A stretch of DNA of 64,000 bases. It comes from Octopus bimaculoides (taxonomy: Eukaryota). The notes under the pieces are model-generated. The model made no database searches. It had not been told where the DNA came from and saw only the letters and a program-made list of their open reading frames with translations. The DNA is taken from assembly GCF_001194135.2 (NCBI RefSeq), contig NC_068999.1, positions 50,177,926-50,241,925 of the forward strand, written 5' to 3'. Position 1 is the stretch's first letter; every line of letters begins with the position of its first letter. The translations under genes were made by a program, and so were the position numbers. Positions 30,560 to 63,000 of the stretch are shown here, one piece after another.

Positions 30560-30560
30560 T

Positions 30561-30602
<42 letters not shown>

Positions 30603-32564
30603 TATATGTCAGTGTCTCCCACCCACCGCTTGACAACCGGTGTTGGTGTGTTTACATCACTATAACTTAATTTGGCAAAAGAGACCAATAAAATAAGGTA
30701 CCAGGTTTTAAAAAATAAGTTATGGTGTCGATTCATTTGATAAAAAAATTCTTCATGGGGGTGTCCCAGCATGGCCACGGTCTAATGACTGAAATAAGTA
30801 AAAGATAAAAGTTATTCACTGCATAAACAAAAAACATGTTGGAAGAATTTGCAAGAGATATAATAGACATTCTGATCACGAATAACATTTTGTTTTTCTT
30901 TACTTAAAGTTTGATGTGTCTGCATGAAGTCAGACATTTCCATAACCACTGAAATTAGGGTGGTGGGGACCATGTTTGTCACTGTTTGAATAACTGGCTA
31001 GATTTAAGCAGAAATCTAATTTTTCATCTTGCTGTGAAAAGAACAGCTTGGGACATCTTTAGAACAGCTAGTGATATATTTGGAATTCAAAAATAAAATT
31101 TGTTTTAAAAAATATGCTGCCTGAAAAAACACCATTTTGAGCATGGCCACTGCCAGTATTGTGAGAGGGGTGTATGAAAGGAGCACTCAATATTCTAGCA
31201 CCCACTACACTCTCGGAGTGGTTGGCGTTAGGAAGGGCATCCAGCTGTAGAAACTCTACCAAATCAGATTGGAGCCTGGTGTAGCCATCTGGTTTCANNN
31301 NNNNNNNTCTACCAAATCAGATTGGAGCCTGGTGTAGCCATCTGGTTTCACCAGTCCTCAGTCAAATCGTCCAAACCATGCTAGCATGGAAAGCGGACTT
31401 TAAACGACGACGACGATAATGATGACGGATAGATGAAAGAAACTGATGTGACCTAAGGGATAGTTTAATGACAGAGGTTCAGGATGTGTGGGAGAAAAGG
31501 AATGAGTAATGCTGGCGGAGAGAATAACAGAAAGTGATGAAAGGCAGTACAGGGGTGGAGATGAAGGTAGAATGAACTGGATACGTGATCCTATGTAGTC
31601 ACTCGCGCATAATCTATGAGATGATCCAGAAGGATTGAGTGATGGGGATGGTGGAATGGCAAATGGTAAGTAAGTGGGTCCTATACTTGTGAGCAACACA
31701 AGGAGTAATAGAGAGTGTCAGAATTGTTGCTGTGGCATTTTTTTATTTTGTTACAGTGACTGGAAGCATAATACAGTGAGAATTGAGAAGTGACTTAGAG
31801 ACCAGCAATAGGGCATGAGTAAACGAATGCAATGGATGACAAGCAGTAGACGAGAAATAAAAAAAACATGAGCGAGAGAGAGAACAATGTGTGGCAAAGA
31901 GAAAAGAGATGCACTGCAGTGCAGTTCATAAGAGGAGGGAGTGATGAAGAGATGAGTAATGGGAAGCAGGAGAGATAGAGTGTAATATGAAGGGTAAGCA
32001 TTAGGAATACTAGTTGGGTATGAGGCTGTAAAGGGGTCAATGATGTAGACTAGGCCATAGGCAGACATGCATGGATACTTATATACAAACATGCATATAT
32101 GTGTATATATATATGTATGTCAATTTAATACACAACCAAAAGAACTACTATGTGAAGAAGGTTGATTCGAAAAAATGGAATGAAAAAGACGAAACGAAAC
32201 CAAGAAAATTAAGATCTCTGTTTTCCCTGATTGTGGAAGCCACAATTAATACAGCAAGTATAGAAAAAAAAATAGCAGGAAATATGCCAAAGTTTGTGAG
32301 GCAGCAGCAACTCAAACCTTCTCATTTTTTCCATGTTTTTTCTTATTTTCTTACTGTCCAGCATCCTTTATTTTTAAAATATATCTAACGCATAAACAGA
32401 GCCTGAAAGATTGCCGTATTTTATAAACATGCCTCGTTAAATTATCGTAAAAGCATGAAAGTATTAGTAGCTCTTTTGGTTGTGCATTAAATTGATATTT
32501 CTCACTGGATGGAGTACTTCTTTTGTTGATTTTACCTATATTGGATCTATAAGTTCTCCCCCAC

Positions 32565-33869: not shown

Positions 33870-34577
33870 ATGGAAGATCATGATGTGGTGTGCCACAAGT
33901 GTGGGATACGGATACATCCACCGGCACTTATTATAACTTATTCTTATTCTTCAAGTGAGAAAATCAGACGAAGAACTATGCCTCTGCGCTTTTTCAATGC
34001 TAATTCCAAAATAGAGACCATCTCCGAAGAACTATTGAACAACCCACGCCATCAAAAGTTTGTCAAGAAACTTCCCCGCACACAGCTTGAAAACTTACTC
34101 AACATGCTAAAAGAATGCTTGAACGGTTCCACAATCAAAGAGTGTCTTCAAAGAAAGCAATTGGAAAAGAGTTTATTAATTAATCCCAACGAAGACTTAA
34201 ACAAGCTTGGGGATGAAGAGCTGAATGCAAGGAAAGCCATCATGAACAAACTGTTTGAGAAGAACGCAACGAAGCCAACCGACGAAGATTTCATTTACGA
34301 TATTCAGATCGAATATAGCAACTCAGATGCCGAGCCTTGTAGCTGGGACTGTATATATGATGCCGATGCTGTATCTGTTATTGTAGGAACTAATAAAGAT
34401 ATTGGAAGTGATGATGAATTTGGTGGTAGTGGGGGGAGTGATGGTGACATTAAAAGGCATGACAGTGATGATGTTGTCAACTATGACACTGGTGATGATG
34501 ATTATGATCTCGACGATGAAGATGATATCGATGATAAGGATGAGGATTCTGCTGCCAATGCTGATGATGAAACTTAA
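33870..34577 (+). CDS. CEP19: Centrosomal protein of 19 kDa, single coding exon, 235 aa
   Basis: Hallmark CEP19 motifs: KCGIRIHPPALIITY, RRRTMPLR, NNPRHQKF, INPNEDLNKLGDEEL, KAIMNKLFEKN, FIYDIQIEY, CSWD. TTTTACAG acceptor at 33836; ATG at 33870. Confidence 0.95.
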   Translation: MEDHDVVCHKCGIRIHPPALIITYSYSSSEKIRRRTMPLRFFNANSKIETISEELLNNPRHQKFVKKLPRTQLENLLNMLKECLNGSTIKECLQRKQLEKSLLINPNEDLNKLGDEELNARKAIMNKLFEKNATKPTDEDFIYDIQIEYSNSDAEPCSWDCIYDADAVSVIVGTNKDIGSDDEFGGSGGSDGDIKRHDSDDVVNYDTGDDDYDLDDEDDIDDKDEDSAANADDET

Positions 34578-40225: not shown

Positions 40226-40363
40226 TCAACGAAAGATACGAAAAGCATAATTACGAGATTTCAGAATAATATTGATGCTCAGTTGTTCAACTAAATCCTT
40301 CAAGGCAGGTAATATATTTTGTTCTTCATCTTCAGCAGTTTTAGAGTGAATATGTTTAAAGAC
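40226..40363 (-). CDS. Unrecognised gene A, probable terminal coding exon
   Basis: TTTTTTCTTCATTTTAG acceptor; phase 0 matches the previous exon; encodes VFKHIHSKTAEDEEQNILPALKDLVEQLSINIILKSRNYAFRIFR then TGA; AATAAA about 25 nt downstream. Confidence 0.6.
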   Translation of the reverse strand, partial: VFKHIHSKTAEDEEQNILPALKDLVEQLSINIILKSRNYAFRIFR

Positions 40364-40717
40364 CTAAAATGAAGAAAAAAATAATATATATATTTTATTA
40401 CTTCTACATTTCACAAAAAAGAAAAACAGTCTTTGCTTTTGGTACTTTTTGTTTTTTTGAAGTAGGAAAGAAGAAATAAAGTACTTACAAGCCAAAGACC
40501 ATTGAAATACTGTGAGCTGGGTTATTTCTTTTCATACTTAATAGTTATGGTATGTTTTTTTTCATTTAGCTGTCATAAAAGAAAAGTAATTTTATTATGA
40601 CTGCATTTGTAAGAAGAGGGATTAGTCAGAAAGAAAAAATGAGATGTTTAATAAGTAAATATCAATTAGACAAACTGGTTCATTCATAAATACACTCACA
40701 CAAAGAAGCTTCTACAT

Positions 40718-41037
40718 CAGGTCTGGCCAACCTGAGGCCCAAGGCTGCATGCAAACTTGTATCTTGCAGATCACTTGATGCTTTCTTGAAATTGGCTTAT
40801 TTAAACAAACATTTCAAAAATTTTATCAAAAATTAAAAATTGTAATGAAAAATAAAAAAGAAAGATACCACTGTTTTTGCAACGATAATATTTTATGTTG
40901 AATCAACGATCATTCATTCATTCATTATAATAATAGCAAGAGAAAGCAAAATGTTTTCAATTCTGTCAGTTTACAAGTGGCCCTCAAAAGATTGTAACTG
41001 AAGTGGCCTGCAATGTAATTTAAGTTCACCTGGCCTG
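40718..41037. mobile_element. Charlie-like hAT MITE
   Basis: CAGGTCTGGCCAAC / AAGTTCACCTGGCCTG termini; TSD TTCTACAT / CTCTACAT (7 of 8 match). Confidence 0.75.
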
Positions 41038-42951
41038 CTCTACATATCAACTCAACTTACTAGAAATAGCAGCCAAATCTCCTTCAAATATACCTCTTAA
41101 TATCTTACTGCAGTTCTATATAAATTTTGTCTAAATAAAAGGTGAGTTGGTCATTGTTGGATTGTTTCTCATGATAGATTTGCTTGATCAAACCCGACTT
41201 GAGACAAACAACAACAACAATAATAAACATATATGCACTTACACTTTCATAGTCTTTCACAGTTCACTGGACCAGTGCTTATCTCCAGTTTCCATGGTGA
41301 TAAGTAGATGAAAGCTAAATAAATGTTACAGTGGATAGGACCCAGTCATATCCAAAAGACTTTCCCAGCAGGTGCAACTGAACTCCTACCCACAAACTCA
41401 TACTAAACAAAATTTGCTTTCAGATGGTTTAAACAGAAGGGTGGATCATAGCCCCACAACATTCTCGGTAAGGCTTCTGAAACTAATTGTAGAAAGAGTG
41501 AATGAAACCAAAATTTACAGAACATTGCAATAGGAAGGAATATATCCTAATATCAAGGCATACTCTGACCAGAGTCATGGTCAAGAAGCTTGGAATAGAA
41601 TACAAATGGGCTAAAGACACCCAAGGGACAGGTTGTAGTATTAAATCAATGGTTAGATTTAAGCTTACATACACACACACAACCTTTAATCTAGTGATAA
41701 GAAAATGAGAGACAAATTTAACCCTAGGTAAAAACACTGGTCTATTGCAAGTCATCATCATCTTTTCTATGCCCACCTTTCCATGCAGTGTTTTTGTATT
41801 AAGGTTAGATATGCTCTTCCTGTTGCCAATCTTTTCTTTTTTCCACCCTTTAGCATAACATCCACAGCGATACAGTTTGTGAGTCGGTATGTTTGTCTCC
41901 TTGACTTGACATTGCATGATAGTTGCAAGTGGGTATCTCTGTCACACAAGTAGTGTTATATATTTCCAACATTATGCAAGAACATGTGTGGCCATGGGGA
42001 AATATTACTTTGCTTGGAATCAAGGGTTGGTGACAGGAGGGGTATCAGGCCACAGAAAATCTGCCTCAATAAACTTGTCTGATCCAGACAAGCATGATAG
42101 CGTGCACATTAAAACAATGATGATGATGGGGTCTTTACATAGGTGTCTAATCTGCTAGAAATAGCAGCCAAATTTCCATCAAATCAACTCCCACCTGCAC
42201 CCAAGTGAGAAGATACATAAAATAATGTAGTCCTAGATACAGTATTGGTGACAAACTAGTAGAAACATTTGAACATTGAATAGAAAGGCTTGGTGTTAGG
42301 AAGGGCATCCAGCCATAAAAGCCCTGCCAGGACAGACACAAGTCTGGTGCAGGTTCCTGCCTGGCTGACTCCTGTCAAACTGTCCAGCCCAAGCCAGCAT
42401 GGAAGACAGACATTAAATGATGATAAAGATGATGATATATATATTATACATACATAAATTTACATATATATGTGTGTGCATATATATATATTGCCAGTGC
42501 CCCTGGACTGGCTTGTGTGGGTGGCACATAAAAGACACCATTTCGAGCGTGGCCGTTGCCAGTATCGCCTGACTGGCCTTCGTGCAGGTGACACGTAAAA
42601 GCACCTACTACACTCTCTGGGTGGTTGGCGTTAGGAAGGTTATCCAGCTGTAGAAACTCTGCCAAATTTAGATTGGAGCCTGGTGTTGCCATCCGGTTTC
42701 ACCAGTCCTCAGTCAAATCGTCCAACCCATGCTAGCATGGAAAGCGGACGTTAAACAATGATGATATATATAATTTTTCCATTTACCAACTCCACTCACA
42801 AGTCTTGGTCTACAGAGCTTGGGATTGAAGTAGAAGATATTTTTTGTCCAAGTTGCCATGCAGTGGGACTGAACCTGCAGCCAAATAGTTGTTGAGCAAG
42901 TTTCTACATAGCCATGCATAACTACAACATAAAAATAATAAGAATACTTAC

Positions 42952-43051
42952 TGTTGGTATCGCTTTATAACCCTGCTTAAGCTCTACTTCCAAATCACGT
43001 CGGTAATATTTCACTTCTCCAGCAATTTCAAGTGTACCAATGAGATCAGTC
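42952..43051 (-). CDS. Unrecognised gene A, 100-nt variable coding exon
   Basis: TTTTACAG acceptor and GTAAGT donor; only one frame is open: TDLIGTLEIAGEVKYYRRDLEVELKQGYKAIPT (phase 2 to 0). The paralogous exon keeps the same length, frame and splice sites. Confidence 0.75.
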
Positions 43052-44158
43052 CTGTAAAATGAATTATGAATCTGACAAACACTGGAATCATATTCATCAT
43101 CATTTTAATGCCTGCTTTTTCCATATTAATCAGAGATTTATTGAGGCAGGTTCTTCTACAACTGAATGCTCTCCCTGTCATTAACCCTTCTTTGATTCTG
43201 AATATTATTTTCATTTTTTCTGAATGAGATGCTAATCCATCACAGAGTTAATAATCCCTAAGTACCACTGACAAACATTCTCAGCTGAGTGTGCTGGAAT
43301 AATGTGAAATGAAGTGCCTTGCTCAAGAACACAATGTAATGGCTGGGCTGAGAACTGAACATACAATCCAACAACCATCCTAACTATTAGGCNNNNNNNN
43401 NNNNNNNNNNNNNNNNNNNNNNNNNNNNNNNNNNNNNNNNNNNNNNNNNNNNNNNNNNNNNNNNNNNNNNNNNNNNNNNNNNNNNNNNNNNNNNNNNNNN
43501 NNNNNNNNNNNNNNNNNNNNNNNNNNNNNNNNNNNNNNNNNNNNNNNNNNNNNNNNNNNNNNNNNNNNNNNNNNNNNNNNNNNNNNNNNNNNNNNNNNNN
43601 NNNNNNNNNNNNNNNNNNNNNNNNNNNNNNNNNNNNNNNNNNNNNNNNNNNNNNNNNNNNNNNNNNNNNNNNNNNNNNNNNNNNNNNNNNNNNNNNNNNN
43701 NNNNNNNNNNNNNNNNNNNNNNNNNNNNNNNNNNNNNNNNNNNNNNNNNNNNNNNNNNNNNNNNNNNNNNNNNNNNNNNNNNNNNNNNNNNNNNNNNNNN
43801 NNNNNNNNNNNNNNNNNNNNNNNNNNNNNNNNNNNNNNNNNNNNNNNNNNNNNNNNNNNNNNNNNNNNNNNNNNNNNNNNNNNNNNNNNNNNNNNNNNNN
43901 NNNNNNNNNNNNNNNNNNNNNNNNNNNNNNNNNNNNNNNNNNNNNNNNNNNNNNNNNNNNNNNNNNNNNNNNNNNNNNNNNNNNNNNNNNNNNNNNNNNN
44001 NNNNNNNNNNNNNNNNNNNNNNNNNNNNNNNNNNNNNNNNNNNNNNNNNNNNNNNNNNNNNNNNNNNNNNNNNNNNNNNNNNNNNNNNNNNNNNNNNNNN
44101 NNNNNNNNNNNNNNNNNNNNNNNNNNNNNNNNNNNNNNNNNNNNNNNNNNNNNNNNNN

Positions 44159-44197
<39 letters not shown>

Positions 44198-44428
44198 CTG
44201 TGTGTGTTTGTATTTGTCCACCACCACTGCTTGAAATAAGAAATAAGATAGATAATGGTGAATTAAACAAAAATAACAAAAAGACAAAAAGCAGCAAAGA
44301 AGGTAGAGATACAGCAATTAACAAAGAAAGAAGTGAAGGAATGCAAAGAAGGAAGGAAGGAAGCTGGAAGGATGCAAAAAAGCAAACAAGCGAAAAAAAA
44401 AGGGAAGATGTATATATTTAAGAGTTAC

Positions 44429-44462
44429 CAGAATCAAATGAATAATAGGAACGGCCAGCCAT
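44429..44462 (-). CDS. Unrecognised gene A, first coding exon (whole exon 44429-44482), MAGRSYYSFDS
   Basis: Strong pyrimidine tract plus CAG acceptor; upstream in-frame stop; GTGATGG start context; GTAACT donor (phase 1). The coding sequence is identical in the inverted copy at 56556-56589. Confidence 0.6.
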
Positions 44463-44584
44463 CACACAGGTCTATTAATGAGCTGATTGGGGAAAAAAAC
44501 AAATACAATATAAGTCAATAAGCACAAAAAGAAGACAACACAGGAGGGAGATGTTTTAACAAAGGGATAGACATTATTCTAACT

Positions 44585-44815
44585 CAGTGGTTCTCAAACA
44601 TTTTTCATCTGTGAACCCTTTTGGTACTTATTTTATTTGGATAGACCACCATAGCCATTCGATGTGTGTAAAAAAGAAGATCCAAATGTATTTTTATAAA
44701 ATATTATTAGGGATTATATAAAAAAAATATTTTGTGTATAGTAGAAGTACAGCCAATTTATTGCAGATAAATTTTAACAAGAAAACCTTATATGGATCCT
44801 GTTTGAGAACCCCTG
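44585..44815. mobile_element. hAT-type MITE
   Basis: CAGTGGTTCTCAAAC / GTTTGAGAACCCCTG TIRs; TSD not recognisable. Confidence 0.65.
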
Positions 44816-46547
44816 ACCTGTTTCAATACAGTTTCAACAATAATAGTTTGTATATATACACATAGTATTATATATATATATATATATCATCTGTATGTAT
44901 ACATACATGCATGTCTCGTTTCTGTTTTTTTCGTTGTTCGAAAAAAGTTCGTTTTTTGTCCTCGTCTTTATGTTTTCGTTTCTCATTGTGTTTAACGTTT
45001 TCTGTGATGTCCTGTACCCATATATGCATGTATGTATACATATAGATGTCAGTATGTACATACATGTATGGATATTTGCATATAATTATATATTATATAT
45101 GTTATTATATGATCGAACGCCACGCACTGTCTCCAAAACACGAGGCAGCTTTCTTTACTCATAACTTTTACAAAAATGGGTCATTTTTAATGAAATTTTC
45201 CATAAATATCTGGCATAACTACAGAGTTGTAAGCTCTATAAGTGAGGAATACGTACACCCAGTGTTTCGGGTTAGGGTTTTTATTACGCCGAAAACGGGT
45301 GGTATCCGTATTCTTTACCTTCGCTCAATTTTCTACAAATACTTTACAGGATGTGTAAATTACGAGTATATTGAAATTTGAATGTGTAAAGGAAAACAGT
45401 GAGCACTTACATACTGACACTCCTCAATTTATTTCGAAATTTCAACTACCATTTTGAATATAGGATGTGTTGCTATGTATGTGTACGAGCCCACTAATTT
45501 TCTATTTTCATATTAAGTTTAAATTTCGATATTATCTTAATCTACATAATCTGAAAGGTATTTGGCATAACTAGAGTTGTACGCCCCAGACTTTGGAAGG
45601 TCATAACTTTAAGAAAAATGAATATTTTTAAATGAAATTTTCTATGCATATAGTATTTATTATGTAGATTCCGAATATACAAACATTTCCGGTGAAAGTG
45701 TTTTGGAATGGGGATGGGGGACAATTTTCGGAAATTCCAACACAGTCCACTTAAATTCTTCTTAACTTCCAGGAAAATTAATATTTTTTCGTGAAATTTT
45801 CTACAAATATACCTTGATATGGCATATATATANNNNNNNNNNNNNNNNNNNNNNNNNNNNNNNNNNNNNNNNNNNNNNNNNNNNNNNNNNNNNNNNNNNN
45901 NNNNNNNNNNNNNNNNNNNNNNNNNNNNNNNNNNNNNNNNNNNNNNNNNNNNNNNNNNNNNNNNNNNNNNNNNNNNNNNNNNNNNNNNNNNNNNNNNNNN
46001 NNNNNNNNNNNNNNNNNNNNNNNNNNNNNNNNNNNNNNNNNNNNNNNNNNNNNNNNNNNNNNNNNNNNNNNNNNNNNNNNNNNNNNNNNNNNNNNNNNNN
46101 NNNNNNNNNNNNNNNNNNNNNNNNNNNNNNNNNNNNNNNNNNNNNNNNNNNNNNNNNNNNNNNNNNNNNNNNNNNNNNNNNNNNNNNNNNNNNNNNNNNN
46201 NNNNNNNNNNNNNNNNNNNNNNNNNNNNNNNNNNNNNNNNNNNNNNNNNNNNNNNNNNNNNNNNNNNNNNNNNNNNNNNNNNNNNNNNNNNNNNNNNNNN
46301 NATATATATATATATAAGATAAACAAGAGTGAAATATACATCCAACTACGTGCATCCACATACCAACTTTCTCACACCTTTATATATATATATATATATG
46401 TGTGTGTGTATGTATATATAACAAGCGCACGTGATTATATGCATGTATATGTACTGCTTACTCGTATCTAGTAATAAATTATACGATTCAAAACCTTTAT
46501 GCAGCTGTGTTTTTTGTAGAAATAAAAGAAGTGATAATACACGATAC

Positions 46548-46650
46548 CTGTCCAAAGAACGACCAGCATCAAGCGACCACCGGATGCTTAATTGCCACTG
46601 TGCTCTGTGACGAGCTGAGGGAGGAGGAGCGAAAGGGCCACTCGATGGCT
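46548..46650 (-). other. Unrecognised gene A, non-coding exon 1 (5' boundary approximate)
   Basis: CTTTGGACAG|GTATCG donor. The exon and the following about 110 nt of intron align in inverted orientation with 53300-53560. Confidence 0.55.
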
Positions 46651-52600: not shown

Positions 52601-53299
52601 GTTGAAATCACCGAAATACGACAACTTTAACACGAAATAACTTCGTGAATAGAATTTTTTCTAACAACGCTAAGAGTAAAAGATGTTCTATATGACACGT
52701 TCTACCAGTATACGAAGTTTCAAAGTGTTTAGTTAAAGAAAATTAATTAATCGAGCTGCCCATGAAAAGGAAAAGATCCTTTTTCTTCGTATTTCGCCAA
52801 AAATATTTCTAAAATAAGTGAAAAATCAAGAAATTAGTGTGGGGTTAAATTCGTATTAAGATTTTGAAAACGTGTTCCTAGTATGTCAGGTTTTCCATTT
52901 AGGAACTNNNNNNNNNNNNNNNNNNNNNNNNNNNNNNNNNNNNNNNNNNNNNNNNNNNNNNNNNNNNNNNNNNNNNNNNNNNNNNNNNNNNNNNNNNNNN
53001 NNNNNNNNNNNNNNNNNNNNNNNNNNNNNNNNNNNNNNNNNNNNNNNNNNNNNNNNNNNNNNNNNNNNNNNNNNNNNNNNNNNNNNNNNNNNNNNNNNNN
53101 NNNNNNNNNNNNNNNNNNNNNNNNNNNNNNNNNNNNNNNNNNNNNNNNNNNNNNNNNNNNNNNNNNNNNNNNNNNNNNNNNNNNNNNNNNNNNNNNNNNN
53201 NNNNNNNNNNNNNNNNNNNNNNNNNNNNNNNNNNNNNNNNNNNNNNNNNNNNNNNNNNNNNNAAAAAAAAAAAAAATCCTAAAGTGGGTGTGGGTCTTT

Positions 53300-53444
53300 A
53301 CCTCCGCCTCGGTTCGTCCTATCCCTCCTCCCCCTTACGTAACAGCGTTCATTAGGCGTTCTGTTGTCGGTTGGTCTTGGTTGTGCTTTGGACAGTCTTC
53401 ATACGAAGTACCTTCCAAGTCAATTCTCTTCGAAAAGATTAAAG
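53300..53444 (+). other. Unrecognised gene B, non-coding exon 1 (5' boundary approximate)
   Basis: Inverted homolog of 46548-46650; AAAG|GTAACA donor; carries 49 extra nt (53396-53444) relative to gene A. Confidence 0.55.
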
Positions 53445-53588
53445 GTAACATGTATTATCACTTTGTTATTTCTACAAAAACAGCTACATAAAAGTTTTGA
53501 GTCGTGTAGTGTGTTACTAGATACGAGTAAGTTGCACATATACACACATAATCATGTGTGTGTGTATACATACATATATATGTGCGTG

Positions 53589-53652
<64 letters not shown>

Positions 53653-53810
53653 CTGATGTGTTTGTGTAGACACTATAATATACAATTCTTCTATCTCTCA
53701 CTCACGCTGTTCATAAATCTTTTTAACTTTGATCATTTTATTTATTATTCAGTCATGTTTCCTTTTTTTTTTCCAGCGTCGGTTTTCAAACTTGTTAGAT
53801 ATATAACACA

Positions 53811-53936
53811 GGCACTATCATGCTATTAACTGTCAGAAGTGAAAGTGCTCACTGCCTGCTAGTGAAGTATCTGTCTGTGACAGACATATAGCTCGCTCCG
53901 GCCAGCACTTCTGACAGCTAATAGCATGATAGTGCC
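53811..53936. mobile_element. Merlin-type MITE (126 bp)
   Basis: 31-bp TIRs with 1 mismatch starting GGCAC; perfect 8-bp TSD ATAACACA at 53803-53810 and 53937-53944. Confidence 0.85.
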
Positions 53937-54377
53937 ATAACACAAATTCATGATTTTCAAAATATTTTCATACCCCACGAAATGATGGCTAATCAATCAA
54001 AAACACTCATTAACATTTAGTGTTATACTTGCTGTTGTTTTGGATCCGTGTGGAGTTTCTGATAATTCACACAACTCGAATTTGACGCTTAATTGTAAAA
54101 AAAAAAAAAGAAAAAAAGAAAATGGAAAAATATATACAAATTAAACGAAGTATGCAAAAAATTACGAAGATTCATTTATTTTTAAATGTTTTATACTACA
54201 AAATAAAACAAACGGAAAACGGGCACTTGCTAATATAAACACATGTTGCACGATACAAGGGGCGGTAACTTACTTTTACCGGTCAGGTATTATTAATGAT
54301 ACGAGGGGCCCGACAATATCACCAGCGAATTGTTCACAATCTTTTTTTCTTAAAATTCAGTTTATAACTAATATAGA

Positions 54378-55300
54378 ATGTCATATTTTGTGCCTGAACG
54401 TGGAATTTTTAATGTTATGACCTTATTTCGTCTCGGAAGAGATTTGGGAACAACGGAAAAGGCCATTGACTGGTGTAGAAAATTTGGATTAGTATAAAGA
54501 CAAGAAATTTGTTGAGGAGTACCTTGTGTTAATGGAAGTTATATACCCATTCAATTGATAGAATAACTTGGAGATGTACTGTTTGTCGCAAAACTATAAG
54601 CATGCAGAAAGGCTCGTTTTTTGAAAAAAGTCAGTTGGAAATCTGGCAAATAATAGCTTTTATTCATTTATGGTGCATCAGTGTTGGAAAAGAAAGAGAT
54701 CTTAGTAGTGAAGCAGGAATTGCGCAATGTGAGATAACCTCATCCACAACATATGCAGACTGGAATCAGTTCTGTCATGATGTTTGTGTAGCTCATTTTC
54801 TAAAATATCTCCCCCCCCCCAAAAAAAAAATAGGTGGTACACAGGTTATTGTGGAAATTGATGAAACAATGATGCAAAACATCAGTGAACATCAGTGGGT
54901 ATTTGGAGAACACTCCCCCTCACAAAATCTTGGTTTTTTAGTACCAGTTAAAGACCAAACTGCCGAAACATTGCTCCCAATTATCAATGAATTCATATTG
55001 TCAGGAAGCATTAAATATTCTGATAACGGAAAGCATATCAAAGTTTGTCACAAAAGACATTATATAAACATTTGACGGTAAACCATACCATTAATTTTGT
55101 TGATCCACTGTCACACTGTACCACAAACCATGTTGATTAAATGTGGTCTTCATGCAAAAACAAAATAAAATCAACTCATGAAGTACATAGTAATGATTTG
55201 GTTGATTTCTTAGCAGAATTTATGTGGAGTCAGCAATTTGGATATGAACCATTTTTCAACTTTTGGACCCAAATAGCCACTGAGTTATATGTTATATAAG
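54378..55300 (+). pseudogene. Degraded Merlin (IS1595/ISXO2-like) DDE transposase
   Basis: IGGTQVIVEIDET, WVFG, VPVKDQTAETLLPIINEFILSGSIKYSD, then a frameshifted TVNHTINFVDP...FLAEFMW; stops and frameshifts. Confidence 0.88.
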
Positions 55301-55779
55301 TTTTCTCTGTAAACTGAAAACAAAAATGAAAGTTATAAAACTTGCATACGCCTTAAACATATGTACTCTATTGTTTTATAATTATTTCTGTTGTCTATCA
55401 CATCATAAAATGGGCGAAGGTAAAGCGAGTGCACACTGACTAACCATAATGCTAAAGTTTTAGTAGACAAAAACAGGTGTCTGTATTCAGACACACATAC
55501 TTGTGTGTGGCTTTTTATGGGTATATCTTTGTGTGTGTGTGTGTGATATCTACATATATATGGCTATGATCCTAGGAGTTTTTTCTTTCTCACCTGGGTG
55601 AGGAGCATTAACCAAGGTAGTTTAGGATATTAATTCACCTTTTGAAATCTGACCTGGAAGTCGTTTTCTATAAGCAAGTCAAGGACCTAAGATTTGCTCT
55701 TGATCTTGACAACAGCATTAGAATGGCAAATGTTGAGCTGTATCTTCATCTTGAGGAAGGGATGGAAGTCCGCAGGTGC

Positions 55780-56480
55780 CAAAATGGTGAAATGGGTGGG
55801 TGCAGAAATGATGCCATGTTGTGTTTGGCAAGAAACTCACAAGTGAGGCGAGCTTGGTGACAGGATGTGTTGTCATGCAGAATCTAATTCTTTGTGCTCC
55901 ACAGATCTGTTACTTTTGTCGAACGTCCTCCCTCGAATTCTTCCAAACATCACAGTAGAACTCTCAATTGATGGTCTGGCCCTGAGGGATGAATTCATGA
56001 AGCACAATATTGTGGAAGTTGAAAAAAAAAAGATGAGCATACTCTTGATTGAGCTGCGACTCTGTCGTGCCTTCTTCAGTTGTGGAGAAGAAGGGCTCTT
56101 CCATTGTGATGACTGCCTGCATCTTGGGGTTGTATCTATAGAACCAACTATTGTCACCAGTGATGACCCTTGACATGAAAGTTGGGTCATCAGTGGCATG
56201 GAGTCTGAACAGACTTGGATGCAATGTTCTTTCTGCTCAGTAATCAACAGGCAGGGGACATGCTTGGCATAAACAGACTGCATGTTCAATTCGGATGTTA
56301 GGATTGCCTGCACAAACACATACATCACAACAACAACAACATCAGCAATGTCGTTGACTGCCCTCCAACATTCCTCATGCACAAGCTGATGAATTTTACC
56401 CACATCTCTGGGGGTGACATTTGTGGTAGGTCTTTCAGATCACTCAGCCTTCGAAGCACCTCTGCCACTAGAAACATTAT
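55780..56480 (-). mobile_element. Degraded mariner transposase
   Basis: VYAKHVPCLLITEQK, DDPTFMSRVITGDNSWFYRYNP, KKARQSRSSIKSMLIFFF, HEFIPQGQTIN across several frames. Confidence 0.88.
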
Positions 56481-56555
56481 GTACAACTCATTTGTGTTTA
56501 TTGACTTATATTGTATTTGTTTTTCCCCCCATCAGCTCATTAAAAGACCTGTGTG

Positions 56556-56589
56556 ATGGCTGGCCGTTCCTATTATTCATTTGATTCTG
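56556..56589 (+). CDS. Unrecognised gene B, first coding exon (whole exon 56536-56589), MAGRSYYSFDS
   Basis: TTTTCCCCCCATCAG acceptor; upstream in-frame TAA; ATG at 56556; GTAACT donor at 56590. Confidence 0.6.
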
Positions 56590-56828
56590 GTAACTCTTAA
56601 ATATATACATCTTCCCTTTTTTTTTCGCGTGTTTGCTTTTTTGCATCCTTCCAGCTTCCTTCCTTCCTTCTTTGCATTCATTCACTTCTTTCTTTGTTAA
56701 TTGCTGTATCTCTTCCTTCTTTGGTGCTTTTTGTCTTTTTGTTATTTTTGTTTAATTCACCATTATCTATCTTATTTCTTATTTCAAGCAGTGGTGGTGG
56801 ACAAATACAAACACACACAGATATATAT

Positions 56829-56865
<37 letters not shown>

Positions 56866-57925
56866 CACACATGTATGCACAGACACATATGTGATAGGCT
56901 ACTTTCTGCATCCATCTAATNNNNNNNNNNNNNNNNNNNNNNNNNNNNNNNNNNNNNNNNNNNNNNNNNNNNNNNNNNNNNNNNNNNNNNNNNNNNNNNN
57001 NNNNNNNNNNNNNNNNNNNNNNNNNNNNNNNNNNNNNNNNNNNNNNNNNNNNNNNNNNNNNNNNNNNNNNNNNNNNNNNNNNNNNNNNNNNNNNNNNNNN
57101 NNNNNNNNNNNNNNNNNNNNNNNNNNNNNNNNNNNNNNNNNNNNNNNNNNNNNNNNNNNNNNNNNNNNNNNNNNNNNNNNNNNNNNNNNNNNNNNNNNNN
57201 NNNNNNNNNNNNNNNNNNNNNNNNNNNNNNNNNNNNNNNNNNNNNNNNNNNNNNNNNNNNNNNNNNNNNNNNNNNNNNNNNNNNNNNNNNNNNNNNNNNN
57301 NNNNNNNNNNNNNNNNNNNNNNNNNNNNNNNNNNNNNNNNNNNNNNNNNNNNNNNNNNNNNNNNNNNNNNNNNNNNNNNNNNNNNNNNNNNNNNNNNNNN
57401 NNNNNNNNNNNNNNNNNNNNNNNNNNNNNNNNNNNNNNNNNNNNNNNNNNNNNNNNNNNNNNNNNNNNNNNNNNNNNNNNNNNNNNNNNNNNNNNNNNNN
57501 NNNNNNNNNNNNNNNNNNNNNNNNNNNNNNNNNNNNNNNNNNNNNNNNNNNNNNNNNNNNNNNNNNNNNNNNNNNNNNNNNNNNNNNNNNNNNNNNNNNN
57601 NNNNNNNNNNNNNNNNNNNNNNNNNNNNNNNNNNNNNNNNNNNNNNNNNNNNNNNNNNNNNNNNNNNNNNNNNNNNNNNNNNNNNNNNNCAGCTGAGAAT
57701 GTTTGTCAGTGGTACTTAGGGATTATTAACTCTGTGATGGATTAGCATCTCATTCAGAAAAAATGAAAATAATATTCAGAATCAAAGAAGGGTTAATGAC
57801 AGGGAGAGCATTCAGTTGTAGAAGAACCTGCCTCAATAAATCTCTGATTAATATGGAAAAAGCAGGCATTAAAATGATGATGAATATGATTCCAGTGTTT
57901 GTCAGATTCATAATTCATTTTACAG

Positions 57926-58025
57926 GACTGATCTCATTGGTACAATTGAAGTTAATGAAGAAGTGAGATATTACCGACTTGACTTGAGTAGACAGCTTGA
58001 CGAAGGTTATCGACCGACCTTAACA
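57926..58025 (+). CDS. Unrecognised gene B, 100-nt variable coding exon
   Basis: TTTTACAG acceptor and GTAAGT donor; open frame TDLIGTIEVNEEVRYYRLDLSRQLDEGYRPTLT; 18 of 33 aa identical to the gene A exon. Confidence 0.75.
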
Positions 58026-58629
58026 GTAAGTATTCTTATTATTTTTATGTTGTAGTCATGCGTGGCTGTGTAGTTAAGAAACTTGGTCAACAACATTTTG
58101 GCTTCAGGTTCAAACCAACTGTGTGGCACCTTGGGCAAATGTCTTCTTCTTTAGCTCCAGACTCTGTAGAGCAAGACTTGTGAGTGGAGTTGGTAGATGG
58201 GAAATTAATATATATATATATATATTCTTTTTAGTCATTTGACTGCGGCCATGCTGGAGCACTGCCTTTAATCAAATAAACCGACCCCAGGACTTATTCT
58301 TTGTAAACCTAGTACTTATTCTATCAGTCTCTTTTTCCAAACCGCTAAGTTACAGAGACTTATACATATCAACATTGGTTGTCAAGCAATGGTGGGAGAC
58401 AAATACAGACACACAAACACACACATATATATATACATACAAACATAAATACATACATACATACGACAGGCTTCATTCAGTTTCTGTCTACCAAATCCAC
58501 TCAAGGCTTTGGTCCATCTGAGGCTATACTAGAAGTCACTTGCCCAAGGTGCCATGCAGTGGGACTGAACTTGGAACCATGTGGTTGGTAAGCAACTAGA
58601 GGCAGGGCAGAGCAGGGTTCACCTAATTA

Positions 58630-60010
58630 GACTTAGTTGACTTTTACCCATCTATATCACAAGAGTTACTGATCAAAGTACTTTCCTTTGCTCAGGGCTT
58701 CACTGATATTAATGATAGAGACATAGATGCCATCTTACATGCCAGGAAAATAGTGCTGTTCAATAAAGGTTGACCTGGGTCAAACAGTCTGACCCCGAGG
58801 ATTCCTTCATTATGGTGATAGGAGCCTATGACAGTGCTGACATTTCTGACCTCATTAGGCTATACATTCTGAATACCTTAGGATAGAAGTTCCTTTTAGT
58901 CCTCTTTGGACTCTGGCCATCTCTACAGGAACCAATGGGCACACCCTTGATAAACTTAGAAAGGACCTGTCTAGCACCCTAGGCTCCATGGGACTCAAAA
59001 TAACAACTGACACCAACCTCACTATCGTAAACTTCATAGATGTCACACTAAACTTGGGCGCCAGTGCATACAAGCCCTACTGCAATCCAAACAAAAGGCT
59101 GCCCTACATCAACACAGCATTCTGCCACCCACCTATCATGTTCAGGAATCTAGTGAAGGGTGTCAGCAAAAATATCTTGAACTTGTCCTCAAATCAAGAA
59201 ATTTTGGCTGCTATGGCTCCCTATTACAGCGAGCCTCTAGCATACAGTAGGCTTAAGAACCACATCTCTTATATACTGAGCCCTAGCACTCACAAAAGGA
59301 AGCACCTTGGGAATGTCATTTGGTTTGACCCACCCTTCTCACTCAACGTTAAACCTTATGTGGGAAGAATGTTCCTTATGTTTTGTAGACAAGCCCTTCA
59401 CACACACGCTCGAGTATGGATGTTTGTTCAAGAGGCCTAACCTCAGAGTTTCCTTTAGTTATGCACCCAACATGGAAAGAATATTGACACACAGCCACGA
59501 GATGCAAGAGGCTGGTTGCTCATGCAAGAAATACAATGACTGCTTAGTGCAGAGACCAACATGAGGCTAAGGGAGTTGTATATGAGGTTGTGGTAGTATC
59601 CAGCACTAACAACTAGAGCAATAGCAGCAGAATTAACAGCACCAACAATAGCCATGACACCTCCAGCAACAGTAGCAGCAACATCAACACTGTGGCTGAA
59701 GGTGGCTACTACAATAGCAATGACAACAGCAGCATTGCCGGACTCATACCCCTGTGATAACAACACTGATGGTAAATCCAACAACAGCAACAACTTCTTC
59801 ACACCCAGGCAATGGAGAAAACATGAGAGGCAATAACAGCTAAAACTCAGGTTCAGAGATACATTGGCTTGGCTAGAACTACCTTTAAGTGACACCTGTA
59901 CAACCACAGGTCCTCTTTTAGGGTCCCAGAAAAACATTACATTATGTCATTGGCCATCCATGTATGGTACCTTGAGGATGAAGGAATTTCATACGAAATT
60001 AAATGGAGGA
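58630..60010 (+). mobile_element. Degraded Penelope-like element (RT plus GIY-YIG endonuclease)
   Basis: DFYPSI..., VNFIDVTLNL...YKPY...YINTAFCHPP, VIWFDPPFS, CSC/C linker, then YIGLARTTFK*HLYNHRSSF...WYLEDEGISYEIKWRII. Confidence 0.85.
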
Positions 60011-63000
60011 TAATTGAACAGAACATTTGAGGTCCTATATAAATGAAAGTGGATGAACCCTTAATGACTTGATTAACCTGGGAATTTTTTGATATTCAAG
60101 ACACAAATTATATTGCCCTTGCCTGCATTTCAGGCACTACCTACTGCAGACATAGGACTACCTGTTCGCTGATTAGGGCTGTATAGAATATTTGCAGACT
60201 GGACCCAACCTAGAAGTGGAGATTCCATCTGGTTTGCCAGTCCTCAGTCAAAGCGTCCAACCCATGCTAGCATGGAAAGCGGATGTTAAACGACGATGAT
60301 GATGATATCATTATCATTTATTTAACATCCCTTTGTTCTTGTTGGCATGGGTTGGACAGTTTGGCAGGAACCAGTGAGCCAGATGACTGTACTTAACTCC
60401 ACTGTCTACTTTGGCATGGTTTCTACAGCCCTTCATAAAACCAACCACTTCACAGTGTAGCTGTGTGTTCCTTTGTCTTGAATTTGCACATTGATTGTAA
60501 ATGTGCATCACAATCTGTCAAAAATGTGCTTGGCCTTGAGCAAACATAACCTCTGTATGGTCTAGAGGGAATTTGCTGTTAGGTTTTGGCCATAGCTTAA
60601 GCAGGTACAGCGCCTTCAGATGTAACCCAGCCTGAAAGTTGATGCTGCAAGAGAACCTGAGAGGTAAGTGAATCACACCTTGTCCCTCATACTACATTTC
60701 CTGACTCATTACTCTTCTCACAAATGTATTCATAGTACATAAGGTTACTTTTTCTTTCATGGCAGCTAAATAAAAGAAAACATACCATAACTCTTAAGTA
60801 TGGATCTAGGTGCATGCTTTTTTAATTGTAAGTAGTTTCTTTCTTCTTTCCTACTAAAAAAAAATATATCAAAAGCAAAGACCCTCATTGCCATCATTAG
60901 AGCTTCATCAGCAATATGCCAGCTCCCACCCCCAATCGATGTCTTGACAAATTGGTAGAATCATTAGAATGTCAGACAAACTGTTATGTTTTAGTTTCAA
61001 ATTACACTGAGGTCAGTTTGGCCTTTCATCATTTGAGGGGCAGAGGTGGGTGGGGTGTGTGTGTGTGTGATATAATTGACCTTTCTCAATCCACAGACTT
61101 TTGGCTTTGAGTCTATGTTAGAAGTTACTGTTATAAACTTAGGTGGCAAGCTGGTGGAATTGTTAGTGTGTTGGACAAAATGCTTAGTGGTACTTCATCC
61201 TGTTCTTTACATTCTCAGTTCAAATTCTGCTGGGGTTGGCTTTGCCTTTCATTCTTTTGGGATCAGTAAAATGAATACCTGTTAGATACTGAGGTTGTTA
61301 TAACCAACTTACTCTCCCCTGAATTTGCTGAGCTTGTGCCTAACTTTAAAGCTATTAAGGCAGCAGGCTGCCAGAATTGTTGGCTCATCAGACGAAATGT
61401 TTAATGGCATTTCTTTTGGCTCTTTACGTTCTGAGGTCAACTTTGCCCTTCGTCCTTTCAACGTCAAGAAAATAAGTACCAGTTGAGCACTGGGGCTGTT
61501 GTCATCAACTTACTTTTCCCCTAAAATTGCTGACTTTGTGCCAAAATTTGAAACCATCAAGGATTAGTAGAATTGTTGGAATATAAAACAAAATAACATA
61601 TTTGTTCTGGATCTGTACATTCTGAGTTCAAATCTTGTTGACATCAATTTTAGATTCATCTTTCTGAGCCAATAAAATAAAGTAGTAGTTTGAACATTCC
61701 ATTTAAATACTGGATTCAATATAATCAACTATTTTTCACCCACTAAATTTCAGCTCTTTTTACGTTCTGGGTTCAAATCCCATCAACGTTCAATTTGCCT
61801 TTTATCCTTTCGGGGGTTGATAAAATAAAGTACCAGTCAAACACTGGGGATCGATGTAATCGACTTGCCCCCTCTTGCCAATCCATCACAAGGTTACACA
61901 TTTACAACTGAGTACCAATGTGAAACGAAGCGTTTTGCTCAAGAACACAACTGACCGCCTCGTCTGGGATTCAAAACCATAATCTTACGATCCTGAGTGC
62001 AACACCCTAACCACTAAATATCTATTCAGCAGGAGTGTAATTTATTTTTACTCTGAAGAGGAGAAGTAGTGTTCATGCATGGCCTCTGTACACTCCTCCA
62101 AGACTATTCCTATTGATGAGGTTCTTTATGTTCAGTGTTAGAAGGAAAATGTTGGTTTGGAGGAAATTCCTTTGGGTTACAGATGTGCGATGCAGGTATG
62201 GTTAAGGAGTTAAAATATTTGTTTTGAGATTGCAAGATCCTGGATTTGATCCCACTGAGTGGCATTGGGGGAAAATGTTCTTTACTCTAGATTCATGTTG
62301 ATCCAAAGCCTTGGGAATGAAATTGGTGAAGCAGGAATTTATGTGGAATCTTGTCAGGTGGATTGTACCCATAATCTAAGGGTCCTGCCTTGTCACATAT
62401 TCTTATGCTGATTCAGTTTGGAATTATGTAAAGGGTAGATCATGTCTATGGAATACTCAGCCACTGACATTACAGTTCTATAATTCAATGAGTCATGTGT
62501 GCATTTAATTGAACAATTATATTGTCCAAAACAATGTAGGCTATAGATATCATCCAACTATTTCATTTGTGGTCTTCCTTTTGCTCTCCCGCCAGTTGAA
62601 CTTCACCATAAAATTTGTGCTGTGATTCTTTTCTCAGATGTTGTAACCATATGGCCATGTTATTAGATCTGAGACCTCTCCATGCAGGGGGGTAGTGGCT
62701 TAACCTGGAGTAATTCTCTAATCTTCAAGCTATGCATTCACATTATTGTGTAACATCATTTGGTAAAAAAGAAAAAAAAAATTGATAATTTCCATATATT
62801 TTATCTTTTTCTTGTTTCAGACATTAGACTGTAGCTAATCTGGGGCACTGCCCTGAAGAATAAATTGACCTCAGTTATCTTATTTTAAAGCCTGGTACTT
62901 ATTCCATTGGTCTCTTTTTCCCAGATGCTTAGTTTGGTGGGGAGAGAGTAAACAGACTGCCACTGGGTGTCAAGTAGTGGTGGGGAGACAAACACAGATG

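Follow-up and report, generated by a model that had tools for sequence, protein, structure and literature searches.

Probable arm-to-arm gene conversion in an inverted gene pair of Octopus bimaculoides, with a tract end inside a variable exon

What would make the two arms of an inverted repeat identical, base for base, through part of an intron and the first 19 nt of an exon, and leave the remainder of that exon at 69% identity? The question is raised by a locus on Octopus bimaculoides chromosome CM046619.1 (assembly GCA_001194135.2), of which we analysed a 64-kb stretch of DNA, here called the window, whose sequence is identical to that of the assembly. The original prediction was that conversion between the arms homogenises the N-terminal part of a gene and halts within its variable exon, which escapes. 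The evidence below, and above all a comparison with Octopus vulgaris, leads us to conclude with considerable confidence that the inverted duplication predates the split of the two species, that its 5' part has since been converted arm-to-arm in each of them separately, and that the rest has evolved apart.

Two head-to-head copies of an octopus gene

The window contains two paralogues of one small octopus gene, arranged head-to-head as an inverted duplication. The left copy, which is the left arm (40301..46650, minus strand), and the right copy, which is the right arm (53298..60896, plus strand), were located by tblastn of O. vulgaris proteins and are collinear with the O. vulgaris loci L003 and L004, respectively; the left is the orthologue of the gene for the O. 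vulgaris proteins P0010 and P0007, and the right of that for P0009. Reading from its 5' end, the left arm holds an exon-1-like block, exon A, a gap in which exon B is expected, and exons C, D and E. The arms are 6–7.5 kb long with many arm-specific transposon insertions, among them a right-arm-only insert between the blocks B1 and B2 described below (53605..56490), which carries degenerate transposase-like ORFs, is mariner-like by eye and returned no Pfam match; its presence in one arm indicates that the arms are old. No gene is annotated in GCA_001194135.2 over the left copy (window 23870-44577).

An exhaustive search with a profile of both exon peptides found four "hypothetical" proteins of O. 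vulgaris (CAI9736931-34), and tblastn maps their exons A, C, D and E to both O. bimaculoides arms, with exon B falling in gaps. This match to annotated proteins shows that the O. bimaculoides exons are real. Exon A of the left copy (44429..44482, minus strand) has its ATG at 44462, reads MAGRSYYSFDS and ends in phase 1, and it matches the MAGRVYYSFDD of P0007, P0008 and P0010; that of the right copy (56536..56589, plus strand; ATG at 56556) has the same coding part. Exon C, the "variable exon" of the original prediction, is 100 nt long on the left (42952..43051, minus strand), bounded by AG and GTAAGT, and encodes TDLIGTLEIAGEVKYYRRDLEVELKQGYKAIPT, of which 24 of 33 residues are those of P0010; on the right (57926..58025, plus strand) it encodes TDLIGTIEVNEEVRYYRLDLSRQLDEGYRPTLT, with 19 of 33 residues as in P0009. 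Exon D of the left copy (40538..40569, minus strand; LNEKKHTITIK) lies within a block that we call B4 (40429-40632). In the right copy (60766..60825, plus strand) its first 32 nt run up to a GTATGG donor, and reading through that donor gives LNKRKHTITLKYGSRCMLF followed by a stop, which resembles the C-terminus of P0009. Exon E of the left copy (40301..40363, minus strand) has KHIHSKTAEDEEQNILPAL as its conserved frame, with an A-run one base shorter than in O. vulgaris that causes a frameshift with the normal acceptor.

Exon B, which in O. vulgaris has 82 nt and 28 residues, is required by the reading frame, and we therefore place it in the assembly gaps of both arms: in 43393..44158 on the left, ~500 nt downstream of exon A, and in the mirror gap 56921..57689 on the right. 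A reading of the exons as probably spurious could point to the missing annotation, to an ATG frame of exon A that runs into a stop once it reaches exon C, and to 13 pseudo-exons of comparable quality elsewhere in the window. It is refuted by the O. vulgaris proteins, and an exon B within the gap resolves the frame problem.

The product is predicted to be an all-beta protein of ~80–140 residues. Its N-terminus, MAGR(S/V)YYSFD, is non-hydrophobic by eye. The profile search of the exon peptides found no relatives outside octopus, and the O. vulgaris proteins gave nothing above noise when compared with Pfam or with PDB sequences. Word-indexed protein searches returned no match for the two exon peptides joined or for a 67-aa ORF across the intron/exon boundary, exact-product look-ups of the window ORFs 54602-55075, 58988-59440, 43011-43214 and 57763-57966 no record, and one metagenome scan no match to a 27-mer at the exon start. 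An AlphaFold model of P0010 built on a 4-sequence alignment reached a pLDDT of 54.6, inadequate for a fold search.

Other identities for the locus were considered and set aside. A structured RNA in the identical tract is not suggested by folding z-scores of +1.1 and +0.1; the whole window contains no Rfam family and no tRNA gene, and its TE-like and other ORFs have no Pfam match. Nor are the arms the long terminal inverted repeats of a large DNA transposon, for the spacer is devoid of long ORFs and the arms consist of conserved genes with orthologues. Finally, we dropped the reading of the arms as mis-scaffolded haplotypes because their outer blocks are 72–79% identical and each arm has an orthologue of its own.

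Identity along the arms

The perfect tract covers 236 nt of intron and the first 19 nt of exon C on the left (43033..43287, minus strand) and starts at a gap edge on the right (57690..57944, plus strand); as assembled, the one is the reverse complement of the other at 255 of 255 positions. It had been predicted that 43052-43286 and the reverse complement of 57691-57925 are 100% identical and that identity continues through the first 19 nt of the variable exon, and both statements hold, with one further identical base at 43287/57690. When the mismatch positions were permuted 20,000 times, no run of this length arose, and the longest was 106 nt. Identity then falls, close to the ~70% foreseen, to 69% over nt 20–100 of the exon (42952-43032; 25 substitutions in 81 nt), all of the substitutions lying in a divergent core at 42956..43032 (minus strand; right partner 57945-58021). 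The boundary is in register: the alignment passes ungapped from 255/255 into 25/81 substitutions with no insertion junction. The tract offers few polarisable differences from which a GC bias might be read; its GC content is 0.34 and that of the exon core 0.40. Read from the alignment, the O. bimaculoides tract ends between nt 19 and 20 of exon C, an edge that can be placed within about ten bases.

On the far side of the core, a 35-nt run across the splice donor is again identical (42921..42955, minus strand; right partner 58022-58056; P=0.009 against the old background), and the divergent core is therefore an island. This run is almost invariant in all four sequences compared below, with a single TG/CA dinucleotide that groups by species. 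It is followed by a SINE fragment common to both arms (42764..42920, minus strand; right partner 58057-58215) with 78% identity.

Upstream of the gap lies block B2, comprising exon A and flanking intron (44159..44528, minus strand; right partner 56491-56859), which differs between the arms at 13 of 370 columns (96.5%, or ~97% identity, where 97–98% had been proposed for this "exon-2 block"). B2 is in part low-complexity and microsatellite sequence, and four of the 13 differences sit in the microsatellite. Identity along the block climbs gradually, from 92% in the first 50 nt to 96–100% further in. With 97% here and 100% beside exon C, more than one event or a gradient is implied. Farther out, B1 ("exon 1" and the start of its intron; 46381..46549, minus strand; right partner 53443-53604), a putative exon with an AGGTA donor-like motif in all four sequences, is 78.7% identical, so that the ~80% originally assigned to exon 1 and to the SINE agrees with our values for both. 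B4 (40429-40632 against 60698-60882) is 72% identical.

How far can the perfect step be trusted? On the right arm its first base, 57690, is precisely the edge of a gap. Mirror gaps interrupt both arms, the one in the right arm masking the upstream extent of the identity. The same assembly carries a gap-edge duplication artefact, 31255-31297 being equal to 31308-31350, an overlap of 43 nt left unmerged on the two sides of a 10-N gap. GCA_001194135.2 comprises 713,915 contigs (PMC10700109), and such fragmentation counts for the possibility that a short-read assembler or gap closer reused one consensus, the true right-arm intron being ~97% identical or less. Since the tract starts at a gap and gap-edge artefacts occur, both the exact 100% and the length given for the tract are provisional. 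We nevertheless regard a reused consensus as unlikely, for nine single-base differences were kept separate in the adjoining exon-A block despite identical stretches of up to 122 nt, the right contig is unbroken from the common tract into the right-specific exon core, and a homogenised 5' part of like kind, with exon islands, appears in an independent long-read assembly of O. vulgaris. Moreover, such an artefact would merely turn 100% into "very high" and would leave the conversion signal of B2 as it is.

Grouping of sites in two species

The decisive comparison involves four sequences from two species, both O. bimaculoides arms and their O. vulgaris orthologues (L003 and L004); the O. sinensis CEP19 locus with its 10-kb flank ends at the equivalent of ~36.9 kb in the window, short of the arms. 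The O. vulgaris assembly derives from long reads of the ONT type (PMC10700109). The three loci read in it contain no N; the same two genes are likewise head-to-head, and there are at least three copies, the third being either a paralogue or a haplotype of L004. We divided the alignment into a 5' part (exon-A block, intron before the variable exon, and nt 1–19 of exon C) and a 3' part (nt 20–100 of exon C, the SINE and the exon-D block). Of the informative sites, 38 in the 5' part group the sequences by species and none by orthology, and in the 3' part 40 group by orthology, one by species and one otherwise (Fisher p=4e-22 for the difference in pattern). That the arms should be more alike within than between species had been put forward as a check on conversion, and over the 5' part they are. 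The blocks taken singly give the same picture: B2 has 28 sites by species and none by orthology, with identities of 97.0% between the O. bimaculoides arms, 95.1% between the O. vulgaris arms and 85–87% between species, and orthology prevails in the exon C core (six sites to none), the SINE fragment 42764..42920 (15 to none), B4 (19, with one by species and one other) and, weakly, B1 (four, with one by species and one other). As the SINE fragment groups by orthology, it was in place before the species diverged and has escaped conversion since.

Structural changes tell the same story. A SINE of ~400 nt occupies one site of intron A-B in both O. vulgaris arms and is present in neither O. bimaculoides arm. 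Conversely, both O. bimaculoides arms have a junction at 43219/43220, equal to 57757/57758, that neither O. vulgaris copy has; the sequence that adjoins the conserved intron there (43220..43287, minus strand) is missing at this place from both O. vulgaris copies and lies ~480 nt further upstream, inverted, in the right-type one. Together with the site patterns (38:0 against 40:1), these changes common to both arms sustain the central proposal of arm-to-arm conversion halting inside the variable exon.

Might there have been no conversion at all, the introns being alike through strong purifying selection, for instance on splicing or regulatory elements, and the exons free to vary? Some sequence does behave in this way: the ~45 nt that precede exon C, the 35 nt that follow it and ~70 nt on each side of exon B are near-invariant in all copies of both species. 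Constraint leaves unexplained, however, why both paralogues have species-specific states at the 38 sites, with none by orthology, and why a lineage-specific SINE or rearrangement occurs in both arms; nor does it suit B2, which is partly microsatellite and low-complexity and is 95–97% identical within species but 85–87% between them. At the start of exon C, over its initial 19 nt, constraint is ruled out, because the two O. bimaculoides arms match at 19 of 19 positions and every other comparison at 14–15, leaving 4–5 that differ. Constraint is thus contradicted for the bulk of the tract and could still explain the short exon-flanking stretches; as a substitute for conversion we consider it exceedingly improbable.

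With 5' sites grouping by species and 3' sites by orthology, the duplication predates the split and conversion postdates it, and orthology outside the tract together with the conserved head-to-head layout likewise places the duplication before speciation. The course of events that we favour is as follows. The inverted duplication arose before the split of O. bimaculoides and O. vulgaris; the exon-1 block, the exon C core, the SINE and the exon-D block, which form its outer parts, are now 72–79% identical between the arms, each arm nearer to its own O. vulgaris orthologue. After the split, and independently in each species, the 5' part was overwritten from arm to arm by non-reciprocal homologous repair, that is, interlocus gene conversion. 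The segment homogenised in O. bimaculoides runs from about 44528/56491 to 43033/57944, or ~1.5 kb with the gap included, and 3' of its end the arms have evolved separately. By a rough local clock, the latest event may be younger than ~3 My and an older one ~4–7 My of age. The coding exons may stay different either because homogenised or unchanged variants are disfavoured, a form of diversifying selection, or because dense mismatches block the extension of heteroduplex.

The most recent O. vulgaris tract ends in intron B-C, short of exon C, from which it follows that the boundary is not fixed at the exon and that its position within the exon in O. bimaculoides may be incidental. Of the two halves of the prediction, homogenisation of the N-terminal part stands for exon A, exon B of O. 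bimaculoides being within the gaps. The escape of the variable exon stands in so far as its core follows orthology and does not stand as a claim of selection, the divergence of the core being about that of the old background and dN/dS not significantly above 1.

Exon islands and related systems

In each of three independent comparisons, divergence was higher in the exons than in the introns beside them. Between the O. vulgaris arms the introns are 96–98.6% identical and exons A, B and C 88.7%, 88.1% and 77%, respectively; in O. bimaculoides the exon C core is 69% identical beside an adjoining tract of 100%; and in O. vulgaris copies 2 and 3, exons A and B differ by 10% and everything else by 0.4%. 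Over 15 kb the latter two copies differ by 0.48% overall, with 73 mismatches, and exons A and B, with 116 coding nt between them, account for 12 of these (Fisher p=4e-13 for a 119-nt exon window). Most exon changes alter the amino acid. Selection on these exons is plausible, with no dN/dS value significantly above 1: dN/dS in exon C is 0.89–2.62 with one-sided p of 0.12–0.59, and in exon B pN is 0.11–0.16 against a pS of 0.05–0.16 (26–33 codons in each case). The substitutions in the exon C core number 11, 9 and 5 by codon position (p=0.33), and its divergence exceeds the old background modestly (p=0.02), with a dS of 0.27 that equals it. Exon C has retained its open frame and measures 100 nt in each of the four copies; of trials with random substitutions, 31% leave that frame open.

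Two alternatives to selection on these islands deserve weight. According to the first, conversion is real and the islands are neutral by-products, tracts ending at dense old mismatches through a mismatch-repair barrier or patchy repair of heteroduplex. The dS of the exon C core at the old background, the absence of a dN/dS significantly above 1, the unlike tract ends in the two species and the raised synonymous as well as non-synonymous proportions in exon B all speak for it. Against it, all three coding exons compared in O. vulgaris, each of 34–100 nt, are islands inside continuous intron of 96–99% identity, 12 of the 73 mismatches between O. vulgaris copies 2 and 3 are concentrated in exons A and B, and all four copies retain the frame and length of exon C. 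We hold such a neutral origin to be possible, if somewhat doubtful. According to the second, the divergent segments are patches copied from more distant family members, that is, mosaic conversion with third-party donors. O. vulgaris does have three or more copies, and the exon A of the third is left-type at five of the five sites at which it differs from its sister copy, in flanks that are right-type; but the exon C core groups by orthology between species at six sites to none, the changes in exon B of the third copy are found in neither of the two other copies known, and the 64-kb window holds no other copy of the gene. Third-party donors appear to us an improbable source of the islands.

Conversion of introns around islands of divergence kept by selection is familiar from the primate L/M opsins and MHC class I genes. 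The theory of concerted evolution by interlocus gene conversion among duplicated genes (PMC3924837), and the long-lasting mammalian gene pairs subject to it (PMC2720389), describe much of what is seen here: within-species paralogues are more alike than orthologues over one stretch and orthology prevails in the flanks, a sharp boundary in register separates the two, and short divergent segments lie inside or beside the homogenised stretch. The octopus copies differ from those cases in being inverted head-to-head rather than in tandem, in belonging to a family so far confined to octopus, and in having every coding exon as an island, on which selection is plausible. With the large palindromes of sex chromosomes, which also undergo arm-to-arm conversion (PMC8600007, PMC8327919, PMC8981503), the locus shares inverted arms around a spacer, one gene copy per arm and intrachromosomal conversion. 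However, sex-chromosome palindrome arms exceed ~10 kb and are more than 99% identical throughout, whereas the octopus arms, at 6–7.5 kb and 72–79% identity with ~1.5 kb homogenised, fall outside the class of large palindromes (arms above ~8–10 kb, more than 99% throughout), their successive blocks standing at 72%, 78%, 97%, 100%, 69% and 78%.

Fast-evolving exons among conserved introns also characterise conotoxins, snake-venom phospholipases A2 and three-finger toxins. As in those families, the octopus exons diverge beyond their flanking introns and most of their changes alter the amino acid. Unlike them, the octopus protein has an N-terminus that, by eye, is without a hydrophobic stretch like that of a signal peptide, its dN/dS is not significantly above 1, and the similarity of its introns stems at least partly from conversion rather than from slow intron evolution.

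It is tempting to speculate, and we do so tentatively, that this is an octopus-restricted family of small all-beta proteins in which each coding exon is a hypervariable island, kept distinct or driven apart by diversifying selection, and conversion keeps the introns and promoter-proximal DNA uniform, which would make it a cephalopod counterpart of recognition- or toxin-type families, possibly with exon-centred allelic polymorphism. What we describe is copy-correction of a known kind in a new, fast-changing octopus gene family, and as such a clean cephalopod case of concerted evolution that can be checked across species, the same 5' segment having been homogenised independently in both. It also brings out a gene that is unannotated over the O. 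bimaculoides left copy, together with a coding exon hidden in two gaps, and an uncharacterised family whose exons diverge far faster than its introns. If there is no selection on the islands, the locus would still be useful as a natural experiment, showing how conversion tracts are limited by the density of mismatches; if selection maintains them, recognition or conflict would be a candidate function for the family, in a group of animals in which few such families are known.

Identity profile and assembly quality

When the left arm of the inverted repeat, read on the minus strand, is aligned without gaps to the plus strand of the right arm, 255 of 255 nt are identical (43033-43287 and 57690-57944), a tract composed of 236 nt of intron and the opening 19 nt of the 100-nt variable exon C. 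Over the other 81 nt of the exon there are 25 substitutions (69% identity), and a second perfect run, of 35 nt (42921-42955; P=0.009 against the old background), spans the GTAAGT donor of exon C. The SINE fragment common to both arms (42764-42920) is 78% identical, the exon-A block (44159-44528 and 56491-56859) differs in 13 of 370 columns, including four within a microsatellite, and two outer blocks, 46381-46549 with 53443-53604 and 40429-40632 with 60698-60882, stand at 78.7% and 72%. Under permuted mismatch positions the longest identical run was 106 nt, against the 255 nt observed. The original prediction read this stepwise profile as arm-to-arm gene conversion that stops inside the variable exon, and its identity figures for the perfect tract, the rest of the exon, the exon-A block, the SINE and the outer exon-1 block (46381-46549) were right.

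Absent from that prediction is the point that the right-arm perfect tract begins exactly at an assembly-gap edge, as the right contig starts at 57690, where identity starts. The O. bimaculoides assembly is a Hi-C-scaffolded, short-read assembly of 713,915 contigs (PMC10700109), with which window positions 23870-44577 agree base for base (GCA_001194135.2, chromosome CM046619.1); the window holds 13 N runs, and the gaps at 43393-44158 and 56921-57689 are mirror-symmetric, one inside each arm. Gap-edge duplication is known in the same assembly, where 43 nt at 31255-31297 recur at 31308-31350 across ten N as an unmerged contig overlap, and the exact 100% identity might likewise be artificial. However, the assembler kept apart nine single-base differences in the exon-A block, the right contig continues unbroken into right-specific sequence, and the long-read assembly of O. 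vulgaris, a sister lineage, shows the same biology. We therefore consider an artefact improbable and, even if the 100% were artificial, the conversion signal would remain.

Several other features lie in the window. An inverted repeat (29797-29992 and 30372-30567), 96% identical in the assembly, lies on either side of the gap at 30069-30339. The right arm alone carries an insert (53605-56490) with two degenerate ORFs, 54602-55075 (+) and 55873-56403 (-), that by eye resemble transposase sequence and lack a Pfam match. Three Ser/Thr-rich minus-strand ORFs (8238-8549, 9623-9946 and 11051-11521), also with no Pfam match, could represent exons of another, unrelated gene, and a perfect 24-nt tandem repeat (63864-64000; 5.7 copies) runs past the window end.

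The gene and its relatives

No gene is annotated in the left arm, and a word-indexed protein search with the exon peptides and a 67-codon ORF returned no relatives. When the exon-A-like piece is read in its ATG frame, translation stops 13 codons into exon C; 13 segments of the window that look comparably exon-like pass a crude filter; the exon C substitutions fall 11, 9 and 5 at codon positions 1, 2 and 3, with no coding signature; and the exon C frame is still open in 31% of random-substitution trials. That the exons are spurious was nevertheless overturned by O. vulgaris protein matches and by an exon that restores the frame. An exhaustive profile search with two 33-residue exon peptides matched three O. 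vulgaris ‘hypothetical predicted proteins’ (E 1e-12 to 3e-6) which, together with a fourth isoform, have the consecutive accessions CAI9736931-34. These relatives contain query words such as GEVKYYR and QGYKAIPT, yet the word-indexed search missed them, and on its null result alone the verdict on the exons would have been wrong.

One of these proteins, P0010 (104 residues), reads by exon, A to E, MAGRVYYSFDD / VSGTFPSKQTVKWSDMKTGSNPHAYIEG / NDLIGEIEIGGEVKYYRLDLGRHLAQGYKAIPT / LNVKKHTITIK / CLKHIRSKTAEDKEQDDIPAL. With the O. vulgaris proteins as queries, tblastn places exon A at 44429-44462 (-) and 56556-56589 (+), exon C at 42952-43051 (-) and 57926-58025 (+), exon D at 40538-40569 (-) and from 60766 onward (+), and exon E at about 40301-40363 (-) in the left arm; exon E was not found by tblastn in the right. 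Exon B (28 residues) had no tblastn match in either arm, and its expected site, about 500 nt past exon A, falls within both arms' assembly gaps, which must conceal this one coding exon. Its phases, 1 and 2, settle the frame problem, and the predicted exon model is thus correct.

Sequence searches with the O. vulgaris proteins found no relatives of the family in Pfam or PDB, and AlphaFold, in a poor model (pLDDT 54.6), points to an all-beta product. In exon E of the left copy (40301-40363, minus strand) an A-run is one A shorter than in O. vulgaris, which with the normal acceptor shifts the conserved C-terminal frame (KHI.SKTAED.EQ...PAL); the cause could be a genuine frameshift, or an error in the homopolymer in one or the other assembly. 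The 67-codon ATG ORF, 43011-43214 (-) and 57763-57966 (+), runs from the intron into the opening 42 nt of exon C, with three residues differing between arms; it has no homologue, its exact product is not on record, and it is probably a chance ORF within conserved intron.

Conversion in two species

In O. vulgaris, whose assembly was made from ONT long reads (PMC10700109), the left orthologue (L003, collinear with the window from 47.4 to 36.7 kb on the minus strand) and the right orthologue (L004) both lie head-to-head on OX597832.1, and N is absent from all three loci read. CEP19, a single exon at 33870-34577 (+) with Pfam PF14933 and an acidic tail, lies ~5.7 kb from exon E (40301), which closes the left gene copy at its 3' end; its protein is 83% identical to O. 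sinensis CEP19, and its synteny is retained in O. sinensis and O. vulgaris.

Informative sites were scored on four-way alignments of two arms in two species. They group the arms by species at 28 sites in the exon-A block, 8 in the intron before exon C and 2 in exon C nt 1-19, with none by orthology or otherwise; they group by orthology at 6 sites in exon C nt 20-100 and 15 in the SINE, with none in either other class, and in the exon-D block at 19, with 1 by species and 1 other. Pooled, the 5' part gives 38:0 and the 3' part 1:41 (orthology 40, other 1; Fisher p=4e-22). Pairwise identities match this: the exon-A block is 97.0% identical between the O. bimaculoides arms and 95.1% between the O. 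vulgaris arms, against 85-87% between species, and in the SINE the four-way comparison gives 82.5% and 75.7% arm to arm against 94.8% and 86.6% between orthologues. Constraint as the cause of identity at exon C nt 1-19 is ruled out, since 19/19 positions match between the O. bimaculoides arms and only 14-15/19 in all other pairs.

Structural markers point the same way. A ~400-nt SINE in intron A-B occupies the same site in both O. vulgaris arms and is missing from both O. bimaculoides arms, and the junction at 43219/43220 (57757/57758) is common to both O. bimaculoides arms and missing from both O. vulgaris copies, of which the right-type one has the sequence joined there ~480 nt upstream and inverted. 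A lineage-specific structural change in both arms requires arm-to-arm transfer. Arms are thus more alike within than between species in the 5' part, and site patterns and the two markers together support gene conversion, as the original prediction proposed.

The inverted duplication is older than the split of the two species, ~34 My ago (PMC10700109). A local clock, rough because the collinear chain used contained one repeat hit, puts the old arm divergence at ~75 My, the exon-A block at ~4-7 My and the perfect tract at < ~3 My. The jump from 97% to 100% (no differences where 255 nt should show about 7), together with a gradient from 92% to 100% inside the exon-A block, implies nested tracts or more than a single event. 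The O. vulgaris high-identity tract spans exon A to 69 nt beyond exon B, and identity drops to 88% in the final 185 nt of the intron preceding exon C, so exon C is not a fixed end point of the tract: a stop inside the variable exon holds for O. bimaculoides (exon C nt 19/20) but not for O. vulgaris.

Divergent exons and a third copy

Every O. vulgaris coding exon is less alike between arms than its adjoining introns (exon A 88.7%, exon B 88.1%, exon C 77%; introns 96-98.6%, with no less than 97% over 35-70 nt next to every exon). In the O. bimaculoides exon C core dS is 0.27, equal to the old background, so the core retains divergence from before speciation and has not diverged recently; exon C dN/dS is 0.89-2.62 on counts too small for significance, and in exon B synonymous and non-synonymous proportions are both raised, also on small counts. 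Selection may disfavour homogenised exons, or mismatches may block the extension of heteroduplex, or patch conversion may have drawn on other family members as donors.

A third O. vulgaris member (L005; OX597832.1 47638432-47680301, reversed) is a duplicate, at least 19 kb long, of the right-type gene L004 and is 99.5% identical to it (73 mismatches in 15,229 columns). Exons A and B, with 116 coding nt, hold twelve of the 73 mismatches and a 3-nt indel (Fisher p=4e-13 for a 119-nt exon window), and most of these changes alter the amino acid; the third copy has a left-type exon A within right-type flanks. The two might be haplotypes of one locus. In the right-type gene exon A is damaged (L004 24746-24784; MAGHACYSFDR, one base lost before the donor), and the annotated protein P0009 starts instead ~14.5 kb upstream with an exon (L004 10001-10174) for which the O. 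bimaculoides window offers no match. The next gene past the third copy (L005 31896-35519) encodes a 322-residue Glyco_transf_11 (fucosyltransferase-type) protein.

We class the locus as interlocus gene conversion accompanied by partial concerted evolution, a process that PMC3924837 reviews and PMC2720389 documents in long-lived mammalian gene pairs; all four defining features tested were found: likeness within species, orthology outside the tract, structural changes in both arms and a sharp, in-register boundary. The octopus arms work like sex-chromosome palindromes (PMC8600007, PMC8327919) but are not of that type, because both arm length and whole-arm identity differ. In their pattern of conserved intron and fast exon the genes resemble toxin and recognition families, in which membership would be putative, as dN/dS is not significantly above 1 and there is no sign of secretion. 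The conversion mechanism is already known and the place is new; the gene family it has exposed is the more interesting lead.
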